Assembly: GCF_000143415.4 (NCBI RefSeq)
Contig: NW_003314729.1
Span: forward strand, 1 to 5,385
DNA length: 5,385 nt
From: Selaginella moellendorffii
Taxonomy: Eukaryota > Plantae > Lycopodiophyta
Direction: 5' to 3'
The notes under the pieces were generated by a model, which saw only the letters and a program-made list of their open reading frames with translations, did no database searches and was not told where the DNA came from. Shown piece after piece: positions 1-5,385 of the stretch (the stretch's first letter is position 1; each line of letters opens with the position of its first letter). A program made the translations under genes and the position numbers.

Positions 1-52
1 AAAAAACAAAATCGAATAGGTAAAAGAAACGAACTACCGGCCATCATCTTCC

Positions 53-330
53 GGGCATGGACTCAAGACGCGCTTGGCTCGTGAAGCTGTGGTTGGATTG
101 TAGGCTGGAGTGTCGATTCCCGCTGGGATCCTGCGGTCCAGTGTCGCTCGACAGAGGGATTCCATCCGTGGTCTCGAATGCGTCCAGAGCACGAGGGATT
201 CTTCGCCAGGTGACGCCCAAGATCCAAGCGTTCCAGGCAACTACATTCTCGCCTCAACCAGGCAGCCAGACATGCCCATCAAGCTGCAAGGAACGTAGAG
301 ATCACTGTGCTGCTTGGCTCTCTGCGAGGC
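53..330 (-). pseudogene. Heavily degraded PLS-class PPR gene remnant
   Basis: The minus strand gives PPR-like peptides in shifting frames: MSGCLVEAR (cf. KCGxLxEAR), ENVVAWNAWILG (250-215; cf. NVVSWNAMI), GEESLVLW, and AKRV(F)ESMP (78-53, needs a 1-nt indel). There is no continuous frame. Confidence 0.6.
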
Positions 331-831
331 TTGCGCTCCTTGATTCCCTCCACTCGGGCACAATGGAGCTTGTTCCTGGAAGCCATTCTAGTCTTGCTCG
401 CTTGCCTGAGCCCAGCAGCGCCTTCCATGGTTAGCACGCTTATGGAACAATATCCTTGTGGAGCGGATCAACGCTGCCTTTGTGCCCGTGCTCGCAGTGC
501 ACAAAGGGCTCGAGTTTTAGTTCCATCTCGATAAACAATAAGTTTGTTTTCCAGGTGATTAGATTTAAACAATAGGCAGCGCAAAACTTTTGAGAAGAGA
601 AAGCTGTTCTCTCTCCCAAGTCTTAGAATTTTCTCTCCCGGATCGACGACGCTGTCGAGAGAATCTGGAGCACAGCAGCGATTCTCGCAGTTTGAAACGA
701 AAAAGTCGTGAAACTCGTCACGATATCTCAATAGCTTCTTGTTCTTGCTCAAGTTCCTCGAAAAACTCTTCGAGCGCTCTCTCGTCTCCTGCCCGAGTAG
801 CAAGGCCGATGGCACGGGTCCATAGCCACCA

Positions 832-1107
832 GGCAGCGTACGTGTTGGCCAGAAGCATGCACGACTGCGTCTTCTTGTCTGGAGCGAAATGGTTGATGTA
901 GTTTGTCACCCGCAGTGCTCGAGCGATGTCGCTGTGCGTTTTGCAGGCACTCGGCTCGAACGGCATGTTGCAAATCATATCCTCGGCGATTTCCAAACGC
1001 CCCGCTCTTCCCAGAACGTCGAGGAAGCAACCATAGCACTCGTTTGCAAAGCTAACTCCATAGTCCCCTATTATACAAAGAAAGCCAAACCAGTCAGTCA
1101 GCCCCAC
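832..1107 (-). pseudogene. PLS-class PPR protein C-terminal fragment (last PPR motifs plus E domain)
   Basis: The translation GDYGV..ECYGCFLDVLGRAGRLEIAEDMICNMPFEP-SACKTHSDIARA...P....CMLLANTYA matches the canonical HYxCxVDxLGRAGxLxxAxxxIxxMPxxP / ACxxH / YVLLSNxYA pattern. The conserved DxxxWxxLL between EP and SAC is deleted, there is no ATG start, and no upstream PPR array is present. Confidence 0.9.
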
Positions 1108-1160
1108 ACCATCGCCACCGCGTCCTGCTCGCTCAGATCCATTGACAAGCTTAGCTCCCT

Positions 1161-1510
1161 AGCACTGAGCTTGAGCTTGCAAACTTCCTGCTCCAGCTTG
1201 TGTATCTCGTCCCTGTGAGCCCGCAAGTCCGCCTCGGACTTCCTCTGTATCCTTTCCACTCTTTGCTTGGCCGCCGCTTCGGCTTTCTCCCTGGCTAGTT
1301 TCTCGGCCTCCAAACGCAAGAGTGCCTCGTCTTTGGCCTTCTTGTCTTGCCTGCTCCTACCCTGTGTAGTGTTCATGGAAGTTAACACATGAATGCGAGG
1401 GAAGTATATGCGTACCTCGGCTTGGTGCTGGGACTCTTGTATTTCTGATGTATATGGTCAATCCACCTGTCGCGCAAACAGGTTTGCAGCTCTTTTCTCT
1501 CTTTACACTG
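1161..1510 (-). pseudogene. Fragment of an RF298/RF4/PIR/MND1-interacting protein 1-type RING E3 ligase (coiled-coil exons), intron at 1415-1362
   Basis: The spliced reading EIQESQHQAE|GRSRQDKKAKDEALLRLEAEKLAREKAEAAAKQRVERIQRKSEADLRAHRDEIHKLEQEVCKLKLSA resembles the recalled family segment E|ARWxQExKAKEE...KxExDxQxxKDDIxxLExExxxL. VKREKSC (1506-1486) lies upstream in another frame. No RING domain follows. Confidence 0.75.
1362..1415 (-). other. 54-nt GT-AG intron (phase 0) in the E3 ligase fragment
   Basis: The minus strand reads GAG|gtacgc...gttaac...acacag|GGT, and splicing joins two homologous peptides in frame. Confidence 0.75.
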
Positions 1511-1674
1511 CCTTTGTGTCCTTTCACTGCTCTTTTGATCCCTTTGACAGAGTGCCAACTCCGACATCCAGGTGACGGCGTCCTTGAATTGGACCCCCTG
1601 GAAGAGCGGCAGACGCCTTGGGAGCCTTCCACAAGATGGAAGATTGAGATGTTTTCTCGTGGAACATTGCGACG

Positions 1675-1975
1675 GCGGCATTTGCCCGATGCGAGAAGCG
1701 GTGGCACTCATGCTTCTTCATTCAACGCCTCAGATCCACGCGGTATTCGTCGCCGCTGGCCTAAGATAATGAGCTCGCATTTGCCCCACTGGTCTCCCAC
1801 GAGGTTCTGCCAGCCAGCTCCTGCAAGCTTTCGCCCAGGATCTTGGGAAGCTGAAAGCTGAGGCACACAAGCAAGTACCGCAGAATCTCCATCGCCACAG
1901 TGCTGCTCAACGTCTACGGCAAGCTCACGCCACGATCAGCAGCCGCACTTTCCATACATTTCCATGACGAGATTA
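1675..1975 (+). pseudogene. Degraded PPR remnant on the plus strand
   Basis: Peptides in different frames: HLPDAR, QIHAVFVAAGL (1731-1763; cf. IHAxIxxxGL), IATVLLNVYGK (1891-1923; cf. VxTALxNMYGKCG) and TFHTFP*RD (1947-1973; cf. VFDxMPxRD). Confidence 0.65.
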
Positions 1976-2174
1976 GCGAGGCCGCTGGAGACGATTTCCT
2001 CCCAGAGATCTGTGCTCACCGACCGCATCCTTGACAAGGCGTCCGCTCCTCATTCCTGCAAATCGGAAGGATAACTTACACACAAGCAATCGAGATTTAT
2101 TCTTTCCTTTGCGTGATCTTATGCGTGAAAGACTTTCCCTTCGAAACTCCTGTGCAATGGAGCAAGCACCAAAG

Positions 2175-2227
2175 GTGTGTTAGAGGGAAACCAAAATCAA
2201 CGTTTTCTGGTGATCTTCTCATTCCAG
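2175..2227 (+). other. 53-nt GT-AG intron in the AsnRS remnant
   Basis: CAA AG|gtgtgt...cattccag|G TAT restores HQR-YLAE (cf. EHERYLTE). Confidence 0.85.
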
Positions 2228-2338
2228 GTATCTCGCAGAGCAGCTCTTCCAAGGGCCCGTCGTTGTATGCGACTATCAAAACGCGTTTCATAGCGATGAT
2301 GGCCAGATGGCGGCATGCTAGTGCGCGAGGCGGGAAAA

Positions 2339-2417
2339 GGCTCCCTCCCACAAGCTCGCCGACCTGGAAGAAAAACACGACTTTCAAGAGCTCTGGCTTT
2401 GATTCTCCTGGGGAGCC
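2339..2417. repeat. 7-bp inverted repeats (ggctccc 2339-2345 / gggagcc 2411-2417) flanking a 65-bp microinversion
   Basis: Reverse-complementing 2346-2410 restores the acceptor tttttcttccag and the in-frame GTC GGC GAG CTT GTG GGA GGG AGC CAG (VGELVGGSQ). Confidence 0.85.
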
Positions 2418-2427
2418 AGATGCAAAG

Positions 2428-2492
2428 GTATGGGGATTTGAGAGTTTCGTAAGACCTCCGGGCCACTGAAATGGTGTGCTTGATTCTTGCAG
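2428..2492 (+). other. 65-nt GT-AG intron in the AsnRS remnant
   Basis: AAAG|gtatgg...ttcttgcag|G lies between the GSQ-containing exon and the YEWY/motif 3 exon. Confidence 0.8.
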
Positions 2493-2723
2493 GCTCGTAT
2501 GTAGAAGAACTACATACGAGTGGTACTGGATTGGCGACGATGGGATCGTGAAGCACTCTGGATTCGGGCTGGGATTTGAGAGGATGAGTAGAGAACATCG
2601 GGGATGTGATATTTCCTGGAAAGGCCAATCAATGGATCACAACGTTGACAAGAGTATATGCTGATAAGTCACCGTCACGAAAGCTGTCACAGGAATATTC
2701 TTTAGGAGATTTTCCTCATGGTA

Positions 2724-3521
2724 TTAATCGAAAAAGTTTATCGCCTCCACAAGGCTCTGAACACTCATGGCCTTTACTTTGGCCAAGGCGTTGGCGTCAG
2801 CAGCCAAGGAATTACTGTTGAGTTTAGCGGTGAAGCTGGTGATGGTTATGGTGGCTTCCCAGGTGGTGATCTTCCCCGCCTTCTTTGTCATGGTGGCGTC
2901 CGCCCAATACATATTTAACTCCGGGTTTGTGGCTGGCGACCTGAAGGAGAAGAGCGTGTACAGCGCCCGAACACTAGTGTTGTCCTCGACGTGCGCAAAC
3001 GTAGGGACGTGCAGCAGCGCCTTTTGCAAAGTCTTGGTAATCTGGTTAGCGGTCTCAGTGTCGTGGGTGCGCTGCAGGTAGTCGCTGACGTCTTTCCAGA
3101 TCGTGTCGCAGCTGCCAGACATGTCCTCGCTGGCCGCTGCCGTGAGGTAAACATACTGCGGGAATGTGGTGACAAGCACTGTCAGAAACTGCTGGAAATG
3201 CTTGGCCTGTTGGCTGGCCTCGGCGGGATCGGTGATGAGCTTTGGAGAGTAGTGGGCGAGTTGCATTCCAACAGCCGTAAAAGTTGCCAAGGCGTGGACA
3301 TGGAACTTTGGTAGCTTGTAAACCTCGGCATTTGCTCCAGGAAGAGGCGGGGCGTTCACAGCAATAGCTACAGGAATGTAGACATCTACATCAGTGGCCA
3401 CATGAGCGTCAACATGCAGGAATCGTGCTCGAGAGACCGCCTTGGAGTTGGAGCTCACGTTCCTGAACACCTCTAAAGCGTGATTGAACTCATTGTTATT
3501 CATCAGCAATGGCAGCGCCAT
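2724..3521 (-). CDS. Intact intronless 265-aa protein, putative Evf-like (Cyt-fold) lipid-binding or insecticidal protein
   Basis: This is the longest ORF. The first in-frame ATG is at 3521 (ttcATGG; the track's 3563 start is TTG) and TAA is at 2726-2724, with a TATA box and pyrimidine-rich leader upstream. Confidence that it is coding is high. The family call rests on length and a recalled pattern (N-terminal NxxFNxxLExF helix, central FxxFLxxLxTxP helix, C-terminal alternating beta strands around the KKAGK turn, terminal helix) and is only moderate, about 0.5. Confidence 0.8.
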   Translation of the reverse strand: MALPLLMNNNEFNHALEVFRNVSSNSKAVSRARFLHVDAHVATDVDVYIPVAIAVNAPPLPGANAEVYKLPKFHVHALATFTAVGMQLAHYSPKLITDPAEASQQAKHFQQFLTVLVTTFPQYVYLTAAASEDMSGSCDTIWKDVSDYLQRTHDTETANQITKTLQKALLHVPTFAHVEDNTSVRALYTLFSFRSPATNPELNMYWADATMTKKAGKITTWEATITITSFTAKLNSNSLAADANALAKVKAMSVQSLVEAINFFD

Positions 3522-3602
3522 GAATATAAAAGCGGGATAAAGAGCAGAGTGATCTAGAGACAACGAGAAAGGAGCGGATGTTCAGATGGGTAGTCATTCC
3601 AG

Positions 3603-3611
3603 CTTTATATA
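3603..3611 (-). promoter_or_regulatory. TATA box of the 265-aa gene
   Basis: TATATAAAG on the minus strand about 82-90 nt upstream of the ATG, followed by a CT-rich leader (ctcctttctcgttgtctctagatcactctgctctttatccc). Confidence 0.7.
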
Positions 3612-3908
3612 CCACCAAGAGCTTGAGCATGCAAAAAACGATGTCAATTGCAATGAATGATCAAGGACATGGGGCCATCTTGAAGTTCCAAGGAATGACA
3701 GTGAAATATCACTTTCTTAATAGAATGCTATACTTTTTGAGATTGCAAGATCATAGCTAGAACTATACATCAGCCTACGTACCCTTGCAAAAAAAACATA
3801 TCATAAATCATCAAGGACATGGCCCCAATATGGAATGACTGTGAAATATCACTTTTTTGACAGTTATGCTATAGCAATGTTGAGATTGCAAGATCATAGC
3901 TGGTCCAG

Positions 3909-4013
3909 CATGACATTTTTTTGTTTTGCAAGGGTACGTATGTCGTCAAGAGCTGGAATGACCCATTGCAATTGACAAGTAAGTATATACCCTTGCAAAA
4001 AAAAAATGTCATG
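3909..4013. repeat. Fold-back inverted repeat, copy 1
   Basis: catgacatttttttgttttgcaagggta (3909-3936) pairs with tacccttgcaaaaaaaaaatgtcatg (3988-4013). There is an inner stem gtcaa/ttgac (3945-3949/3972-3976) and a 22-nt loop. Confidence 0.9.
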
Positions 4014-4208
4014 AATGATAAGGGACATGGTTTATATATAGGGCTTTAATTTCGACAACCTACTTGACAAAAGAGCCTTTAGTGGCTATTTTATCTTTAT
4101 TTATCCCCCAAGGTTTTAATGATCCATGATGATAGTATATTTAAATATTATCTTATGATCACATGCGCTACATTAAAGATTGACAATGTAATATACAGCA
4201 TGCTATAC

Positions 4209-4797
4209 TTGTTGAGATTGCAAGGTCATAGCTACCAACCTATATACCCTTGCAAAAAACATTGTTATAAATTATCAAGGACATGTGGGCCCCAATCTTG
4301 AAACGAACAAGCGAGCAAACCTTATGCCAACCTCCCAACCCTTAAGGCGTTACAGCCTTATATCCCACAAGCCATAGAATATTTTAAAAATAATCCTATG
4401 GTTTCATGTCAAATCTTGCTTGGCATAACCAATACACCCTTAGCCCTCACAGAAATCATTAATTATGGCATTGGACCAGACAAGGGCTAGAAATGTACAC
4501 CATCCAGCATGACATTTTTTTTTTTGCAAAGGCTTTTTGCAAGGGTATGCACGTCCTCAAGAACTGGATGCAATTGACAAGTATGTACATACCCTAGCAA
4601 AATAAAAATAAAAATAAAAAATTGTGAATGGTCAAGGACATGGGTGGTCCCCAATTTTGACAACCTCAAGAGGTCAAATTCAGCTTCATTGTTGAGATTG
4701 CAAGATCATAGCTACCAACCTACATACCCTTGCAAAAAACATTGTCATAAATTATTAAGGACATGGGCGTAGAGCTGCTACAAGTGGGCCCCAATCT
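4209..4797 (+). repeat. Direct repeat pair 4209-4298 / 4689-4797
   Basis: 77 bp (4209-4285 vs 4689-4765, offset 480) with 4 mismatches, all transitions. The match continues as tgggccccaatct after a 19-bp indel (4766-4784). Confidence 0.95.
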
Positions 4798-4945
4798 CAC
4801 TTATAGGAAATGATGGTGAAACATCACTTTCTTATCACTTTAGGGTGTCCTGACAAATATTAATGGTTGCCTCTGGCATAATTAATTATTTCTAAATCAT
4901 TAATTATGGCATCTAGGTCCAGACAAGGGCTAGAACTGTACACCA
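4453..4945 (+). repeat. Direct repeat pair 4453-4502 / 4894-4945, each preceding a hairpin module
   Basis: aaatcattaattatggcat..gg.ccagacaagggctagaa.tgtacacca is present twice. Confidence 0.9.
4508..4630. repeat. Fold-back inverted repeat, copy 2
   Basis: ttttgcaagggtatgcac pairs with gtacataccctagcaaaa. The left arm has a local tttttgcaa duplication and the right arm has an (AAAAAT)3 expansion. Confidence 0.8.
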
Positions 4946-4957
4946 ACCTATGTGGTC

Positions 4958-5050
4958 CATCTTTTTATTTTTTGCAAGGGTACGTACGTCGTCAATAGCT
5001 GGAATGACCGCTCTGCCCTTGACGAGTACATGCAAAACAAATGTGTCATG
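4958..5050. repeat. Fold-back inverted repeat, copy 3
   Basis: ttttgca...gtac.tcgtcaa [loop tagctggaatgaccgctctgccc] ttgacga gtac.tgcaaaa; the right arm has lost the ccct part of the core. Confidence 0.75.
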
Positions 5051-5385
5051 AATGATCAAGGACATGAGCTTAAAGAATGACGGTGCATGCTATAAGCATG
5101 CCTAGAGTATACCAATGCAATTTTGTTTTCAGTCTCTGCAAATGGACTCACTTTTATTATGCAGCACAGATCTGGCTGTTGATAATGTCACATGTTCAAA
5201 GTTGACATACTACCAAATTCTGAGCTCCAGCTATAAAGATCCCAGTGATCCATCACGGTTAACACCAAGGCCTGTTATTTGATCTCCTTTCACGTCCAGC
5301 AATTGTGTGTTCAGTCTTTCTTTCCCCTCTCAAACCTTATTCTCACAAGTGTGCTTCTGCAGGTAGATCTTGAACAATTCCCTCT

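Follow-up and report, generated by a model that had tools for sequence, protein, structure and literature searches.

Genes and other features of the locus

The window (the whole stretch of DNA that was analysed, 5,385 nt) contains one intact gene, which we call type A, together with gene debris and an AT-rich field of short repeats. The features are the following:

718–1107, minus strand: C-terminal fragment of a PPR protein, host debris (sub-threshold PPR match, E 0.012)
1098–1388, minus strand: charged, coiled-coil-like ORF fragment (from the ORF list)
2476–2664, plus strand: short AsnRS-like fragment, host debris downstream of the type A gene (weak phmmer match)
2724–3521, minus strand: type A gene, single-exon CDS with 265 codons and a stop codon (ORF and translation)
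3604–3611, minus strand: canonical TATA box of the type A gene, TATATAAA (pattern search and sequence reading)
3640–5070, no strand: AT-rich repeat field, intergenic region shared by the type A and type B genes (composition and repeat search)
5100–5385, plus strand: upstream region of the type B gene, whose ATG lies 76 nt past the end of the window (alignment of the window with an array unit)

The S. moellendorffii reading frame at 2724–3521 has neither interruptions nor introns, in agreement with the first-pass annotation, which had described an intact intronless gene at this position. A longer form of the ORF, started with TTG, reaches position 3563. All other entries in the ORF list of the window have at most 143 amino acids. 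The same annotation had proposed a eukaryotic TATA box, and this is indeed present on the same strand, 83–90 nt upstream of the ATG. In the whole window a pattern search finds four TATA-box matches, while 0.37 are expected by chance. We infer that the leader of type A lies between the TATA box and position 3522. Type A had also been considered the only intact gene. This is correct within the window but not beyond it, as an intact type B gene starts just past the right end.

Two of the neighbours had been attributed to AsnRS and to an E3 ligase. The piece at 2476–2664 (plus strand) is weakly similar to the C-terminal region of the AsnRS chains 1x54 and 5zg8 (phmmer E 0.18–0.45) and has no match in a Pfam search, so the AsnRS attribution is weakly supported by the phmmer match, with E 0.18 at best. 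For the supposed E3 ligase piece at 1098–1388 (minus strand), Pfam gave sub-threshold matches only. A search with the minus-strand ORF at 2100–2387 gave no match. The debris in the left-hand part of the window has been copied together with the A/B gene pair in the units of a tandem array, which is flanked by full PPR genes.

Some early gene models, with 579 and 356 amino acids, are chimeras in which type A is spliced to debris that is antisense or out of frame, namely AsnRS-like, coiled-coil and PPR pieces, with the fragment at 1098–1388 incorporated in the 579-aa models. Later gene models of type A have 265 amino acids.

The repeat field at 3640–5070 has a GC content of about 0.37 and contains short dispersed direct repeats (families D1–D11) as well as inverted pairs (I1–I16). 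These repeats have 20–77 nt and are MITE-like, and they could be part of promoter architecture or else litter left by transposons. Nothing was found in the window with Rfam and tRNA scans.

The type A protein

The type A protein has a mass of 29.2 kDa, a pI of 6.35 and one cysteine. No transmembrane segment is found, as the maximum Kyte-Doolittle value over 19 residues is 1.29, and the N-terminus does not resemble a signal peptide. Both features had been correctly pointed out in the first reading of the sequence. On the other hand, the C-terminal half had been described as rich in threonine and alanine, and this description is only half right. Threonine is more abundant in the C-terminal half (13.5% vs. 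6.1%), where it forms a Thr-rich alternating pattern, but alanine is less abundant (12.8% vs. 15.9%).

A tandem array of A/B pairs in Selaginella

The exact 265-aa type A protein is recorded in S. moellendorffii as a RefSeq-type model, the records being genome annotations only. The genes form an array at approximately 347–437 kb of the 641-kb scaffold GL377666.1, amid PPR and F-box genes. This setting bears out the plant-type genome proposed for this DNA, the host being a lycophyte and not a fern. The array has at least five near-identical type A copies: Five intact type A genes were located with tblastn at about 347, 383, 395, 421 and 433 kb of the scaffold, and four intact type B genes at about 352, 386, 424 and 436 kb. 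The type B protein has 279 amino acids and is 37% identical to type A. The two genes are placed head-to-head, about 1.9 kb apart, and this pairing is kept in every repeat unit. The units have a period of about 11.8 kb and are nested in larger repeats of about 36–38 kb. The approximately 6 kb found between units contain no ORF with more than 120 amino acids, which gives no hint of an autonomous transposon.

The window itself aligns from 44 to 5385 with positions 4568–9925 of unit L002, in which the type B gene occupies positions 10001–10840. Its identity with the five array units is 99.3–99.8% (99.57% over 44–5385 in the best case), and none of them is an exact match. For this reason, comparison of the sequences suggests that the window is probably a further copy of the array or comes from the other haplotype. 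In the 383-kb unit, the part corresponding to 1723–2606 of the window does not align beside its flanks.

Since the array units are at least 99% identical, their amplification is either very recent or the copies have been homogenised. All nine Selaginella copies examined (five A and four B) are intact, and the four type B copies are identical in DNA. Copies differ at only four variable sites, two synonymous and two non-synonymous, which are too few to show constraint. Between A and B, dN is 0.68 and dS is saturated, and both are still full-length ORFs. The maintenance of both frames at this divergence indicates, at the sequence level, long-term constraint on A and B.

Relatives in ferns

A single type A protein used as a query gave nothing above noise in Pfam, NCBIfam and PDB sequence searches. 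Weak matches to DUF6712, Get5_C and the de novo protein Syn-F4 were sub-threshold and have been rejected. Two family profiles also gave nothing with the same libraries, and in the PDB they matched none of the chains of Cyt, Evf or VVA2. In fact, none of the six family members matches the Pfam Cyt toxin family (Bac_thur_toxin), even with E values up to 10.

An exhaustive phmmer search of 1.84 billion representative proteins gave two matches only: type B (E 3e-34) and a 322-aa protein from SRR8185329 (E 1e-4), a transcriptome run of the fern Cyclosorus parasiticus (PMC6913697). The C. parasiticus contig carries the family ORF uninterrupted and, as it comes from a transcriptome, shows expression of the gene in this fern. 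With profile searches only three more proteins were obtained, all of them from Adiantum capillus-veneris, where the genes sit on chromosomes of 139 and 155 Mb. The Selaginella and fern profiles are clearly related (hhalign probability 97.5%, E 8.9e-12, 201 columns). Family members have 265–347 amino acids. In the alignment C138, the single cysteine of type A, corresponds to a cysteine in each of the four fern proteins and to a tyrosine in type B.

Since type A has identical or near-identical copies as well as diverged homologues, its relatives tell us that it is a real gene and not a chance ORF.

The Adiantum gene models span 1.9–3.3 kb, while their coding part has 0.9–1.0 kb, which implies that these genes hold introns or long untranslated parts. 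Two of the Adiantum models have N-terminal extensions which are absent from the Cyclosorus transcript and from the third Adiantum model, they are probably annotation artefacts. One of these two extended models also lacks one internal stretch which its paralogues have.

The family has been found in Selaginella, Adiantum and Cyclosorus only, that is, in one lycophyte and two fern families. At the sensitivity of HMMER, seed plants, bryophytes and algae gave no match. A search of GTDB genomes, IMG/VR and JGI metagenomes with one or two conserved peptide patterns and tblastn gave no relative, these being weak negatives. Neither the locus tags nor a plant Cyt-like family turned up in the literature searches.

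Predicted fold

A resemblance to Evf and Cyt proteins had been suggested for type A from its residue pattern. Sequence and profile comparisons do not support this resemblance, as no Pfam, Evf, Cyt or volvatoxin match was obtained, and membership of the Pfam Cyt family at the sequence level may be discarded. The predicted fold, on the other hand, does support it.

An AlphaFold2 model of type A built from its single sequence has a pLDDT of 39. With the alignment of the six family members, pLDDT rises to 76.3 and pTM is 0.80. The fold search is thus based on the model of one family member, informed by six sequences. The model has the following order of elements: an N-terminal helix, helices at 71–88 and 99–119, a strand at 124–137, helices at 138–150 and 155–170, three strands at 186–194, 201–213 and 221–234 (9, 13 and 14 residues, respectively), and C-terminal helices. 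Residues 171–200 have a pLDDT of 53–60.

When this model is compared with the PDB with Foldseek, the first ten matches are all Evf, Cyt1A, Cyt2 or volvatoxin A2, with probabilities of 0.98–1.0 and E values from 1e-5 to 9e-3. The top match is Evf (2w3y), followed by the Cyt1A protoxin (6t14 and relatives), Cyt2Aa (1cby), activated Cyt1Aa (3ron) and volvatoxin A2 (1pp0 and 1vcy). The next, unrelated matches are histidine kinases, with probabilities of at most 0.15. The target-normalised TM score is 0.33–0.44 for full-length targets and 0.49–0.52 for activated cores, with an rmsd of 6.5–11 Å, and identity to the fold matches is only about 9%. As a control, the low-confidence single-sequence model retrieves nothing (best E 0.09), so the match derives from the folded model and not from composition.

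Cyt proteins have a central antiparallel sheet between two layers of helices, and their three long C-terminal strands are thought to enter the membrane (PMC4179158). The order of elements in our model agrees with this published topology, including the presence of three long amphipathic strands. Cyt, Evf and volvatoxin are three described clades which share a putative lipid pocket but are tied by structure only, with about 15% identity (PMC5390079). As the known clades are themselves linked by structure alone, we have accepted the assignment: On the basis of the model, type A probably has the Cyt/Evf/volvatoxin (cytolysin) fold.

Comparison with known proteins

Evf, from Pectobacterium carotovorum, is the best Foldseek match (2w3y, E 1e-5, probability 1.0). 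Its chain is similar in length (267 amino acids vs. 265 in type A) and both proteins would consist of a single alpha/beta domain of the cytolysin type. However, identity is about 9%, the TM score is 0.33–0.34 and there is no sequence or profile match. Evf is a bacterial protein, whereas type A is coded by a plant nuclear gene. The pocket of Evf contains an S-palmitoylated cysteine, and the single cysteine of type A is kept in the ferns and absent from type B.

The Cyt group includes Cyt1Aa, Cyt2Aa and Cyt2Ba from B. thuringiensis (6t14, 3ron, 1cby and 2rci), as well as Cyt-like toxins from Dickeya, with E values from 6e-5 to 0.2. The target-normalised TM score reaches 0.52, and the model shares with these proteins the two helix layers, the sheet and the three long C-terminal strands. 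As in the Cyt1A protoxin, the model of type A also has additional N- and C-terminal segments. Type A differs from Cyt in having no Pfam match and in being a eukaryotic gene with a TATA box and paired paralogues.

Volvatoxin A2, from Volvariella volvacea (1pp0 and 1vcy), is a eukaryotic example of the same fold, with a target-normalised TM score of 0.49–0.51. It works with VVA1, a non-toxic relative, in an arrangement reminiscent of the A/B pairs of Selaginella. It is a fungal protein, however, with 8% identity, a shorter core (about 190–200 amino acids) and no sequence link with type A.

The known insecticidal proteins of ferns, Tma12, IPD083 and IPD113, come from seed-free plants and resemble or derive from bacterial families. 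Among them IPD113, which mirrors domains I and II of Cry toxins with about 10–13% identity, offers a near parallel for a plant family resembling Cyt. None of them has the Cyt fold: Tma12 is an AA10 monooxygenase, IPD083Aa has 867 amino acids and no known domain, and IPD113 is Cry-like. In our family Pfam gave neither an AA10 nor an endotoxin match, and the fold matches correspond to Cyt/Evf and not to Cry, which sets it apart from IPD083 and IPD113 according to their descriptions. IPD083 has also been rejected as an identity on the basis of length (867 vs. 265–347 amino acids).

If the assignment is correct, the cytolysin fold, with its three clades (PMC5390079), would be extended to land plants by a clade which is invisible to sequence methods. 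It would be the second architecture resembling a B. thuringiensis toxin in seed-free plants, after the Cry-like IPD113. This would be relevant to the low level of insect damage seen in ferns and lycophytes, and to the question of whether such folds have spread by ancient gene transfer or are far older than assumed. The A/B paralogues would also be a natural system for asking how a membrane-active fold stays harmless in the organism which produces it. The predicted structure leads us to propose, with moderate confidence, that this family adds a plant clade to an already known toxin fold.

Proposed function and alternatives

By analogy with the proteins of this fold, we are inclined to consider type A as a membrane-active protein, most likely involved in defence against herbivores or microbes and possibly forming a two-component system with type B, although our preference for this function is a moderate one. 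The protein would be made in a soluble form and would stay in the cytosol, as it lacks a signal peptide. A lipid might be held, or met, in the cleft that separates the second helix layer from the sheet. The trigger could be contact with a foreign membrane, or else the trimming of the additional N- and C-terminal segments, as in Cyt protoxins. The helix layers would then swing off and the long strands would engage the bilayer. The pair might act as two components, in the manner of volvatoxins A1 and A2: Since volvatoxin A2 has a related non-toxic partner which restrains it, the pairing of A and B could have a restraining role. A membrane-active protein in the cytosol would need some form of self-protection.

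The main rival to this proposal keeps the cytolysin fold but not the lytic activity. Type A would then be a lipid binder or carrier, in the way Evf binds palmitate, or a regulatory partner, in the way the non-toxic volvatoxin A1 restrains A2, involved in lipid handling or stress physiology in the plant. We consider this unlikely, even if several observations are in its favour: The top Foldseek match, Evf, is a lipid-binding virulence factor and not a pore former (PMC5390079), a protein with no signal peptide stays in the plant's own cytosol, and the conserved A/B pairs, which recall VVA1 and VVA2, would also suit a regulatory partner. However, the model keeps the three long amphipathic strands used by Cyt and VVA2 for membrane insertion, and the absence of the type A cysteine from type B means that the family as a whole does not have an acylated cysteine in the style of Evf. 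Tandem amplification to many almost identical copies, as found in Selaginella, is also more usual for defence genes.

A different objection concerns the fold itself. The match might be an artefact of AlphaFold2 working with a shallow alignment, and the family a lycophyte and fern orphan with an unrelated fold. The model is informed by six sequences only, TM scores do not exceed 0.52 and rmsd is high, there is no support from sequence profiles and the single-sequence pLDDT is low. Nevertheless, we find this explanation quite improbable, in view of a pTM of 0.80, of ten best PDB matches drawn from a single structural family, after which the probability falls sharply, and of an order of elements which agrees with the published Cyt topology. 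The poor single-sequence model misses the same matches, and the absence of sequence support is also found among Evf, Cyt and volvatoxin, which are linked only by structure. Finally, the copies might be functionless ORFs, recently duplicated in a segmental duplication and heading to decay. The PPR, coiled-coil and AsnRS-like fragments have in fact been duplicated alongside the gene, and the four variable sites do not reveal any constraint. This is very unlikely, as none of the nine copies is broken, both A and B remain full-length through deep divergence, and homologues persist in ferns, one of them being transcribed.

Origin of the family

No relatives have been found in a possible donor lineage: phmmer, profile and pattern scans detected no bacterial, archaeal, viral or metagenomic relative. 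The base composition is not foreign, as the GC content of the CDS (0.534) is close to that of the host flank (0.522). Because of this host-like composition, the lack of donor-like sequences and the span of the Adiantum gene models, any transfer would have to be ancient, and nothing in the sequences points to a recent one. The patchy distribution of the family is compatible with a transfer in the distant past as well as with old vertical descent followed by losses.

A recent horizontal transfer from a bacterium or a fungus, or an assembly contaminant, would be in line with the intronless CDS found in Selaginella and with a fold otherwise known from bacteria and fungi. We regard this explanation as largely refuted and extremely improbable. 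The gene lies amid PPR and F-box genes on a scaffold of 641 kb, and its Adiantum homologues on chromosomes of more than a hundred megabases. The GC content of its CDS is close to that of the host flank, its TATA box is eukaryotic, and the searches gave no prokaryotic, viral or metagenomic relative.

The preferred reading, a membrane-active protein of cytolysin fold, may be extended to a broader evolutionary scheme, which we put forward as speculative and rather doubtful as a whole. According to it, seed-free vascular plants would carry a fourth, undescribed clade of the Cyt/Evf/volvatoxin fold, either handed down from a very old ancestor or acquired long ago from a microbe or a giant virus. 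Its amplification in Selaginella would have produced divergent A/B pairs, which would act as a two-component defence attacking membranes. Such a clade would be the Cyt equivalent of the Cry-like IPD113 proteins found in ferns.

Maumus et al. (PMC4083422) have described another S. moellendorffii family of unknown function (EFJ10148), whose only relatives are found in a few fungi and one chlorovirus.

The model of type A also has matches among the viral structures in BFVD. The best ones are two unnamed proteins, M1I283 (E 9.8e-6) and M1HBT0, and there are partial matches to uncharacterised giant-virus proteins from Solivirus, Edafosvirus, moumouvirus, Marseillevirus and Hyperionvirus. TM scores normalised on the query are low (0.22–0.34). 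Judging from these predicted structures, giant viruses may carry a Cyt/Evf-like fold.
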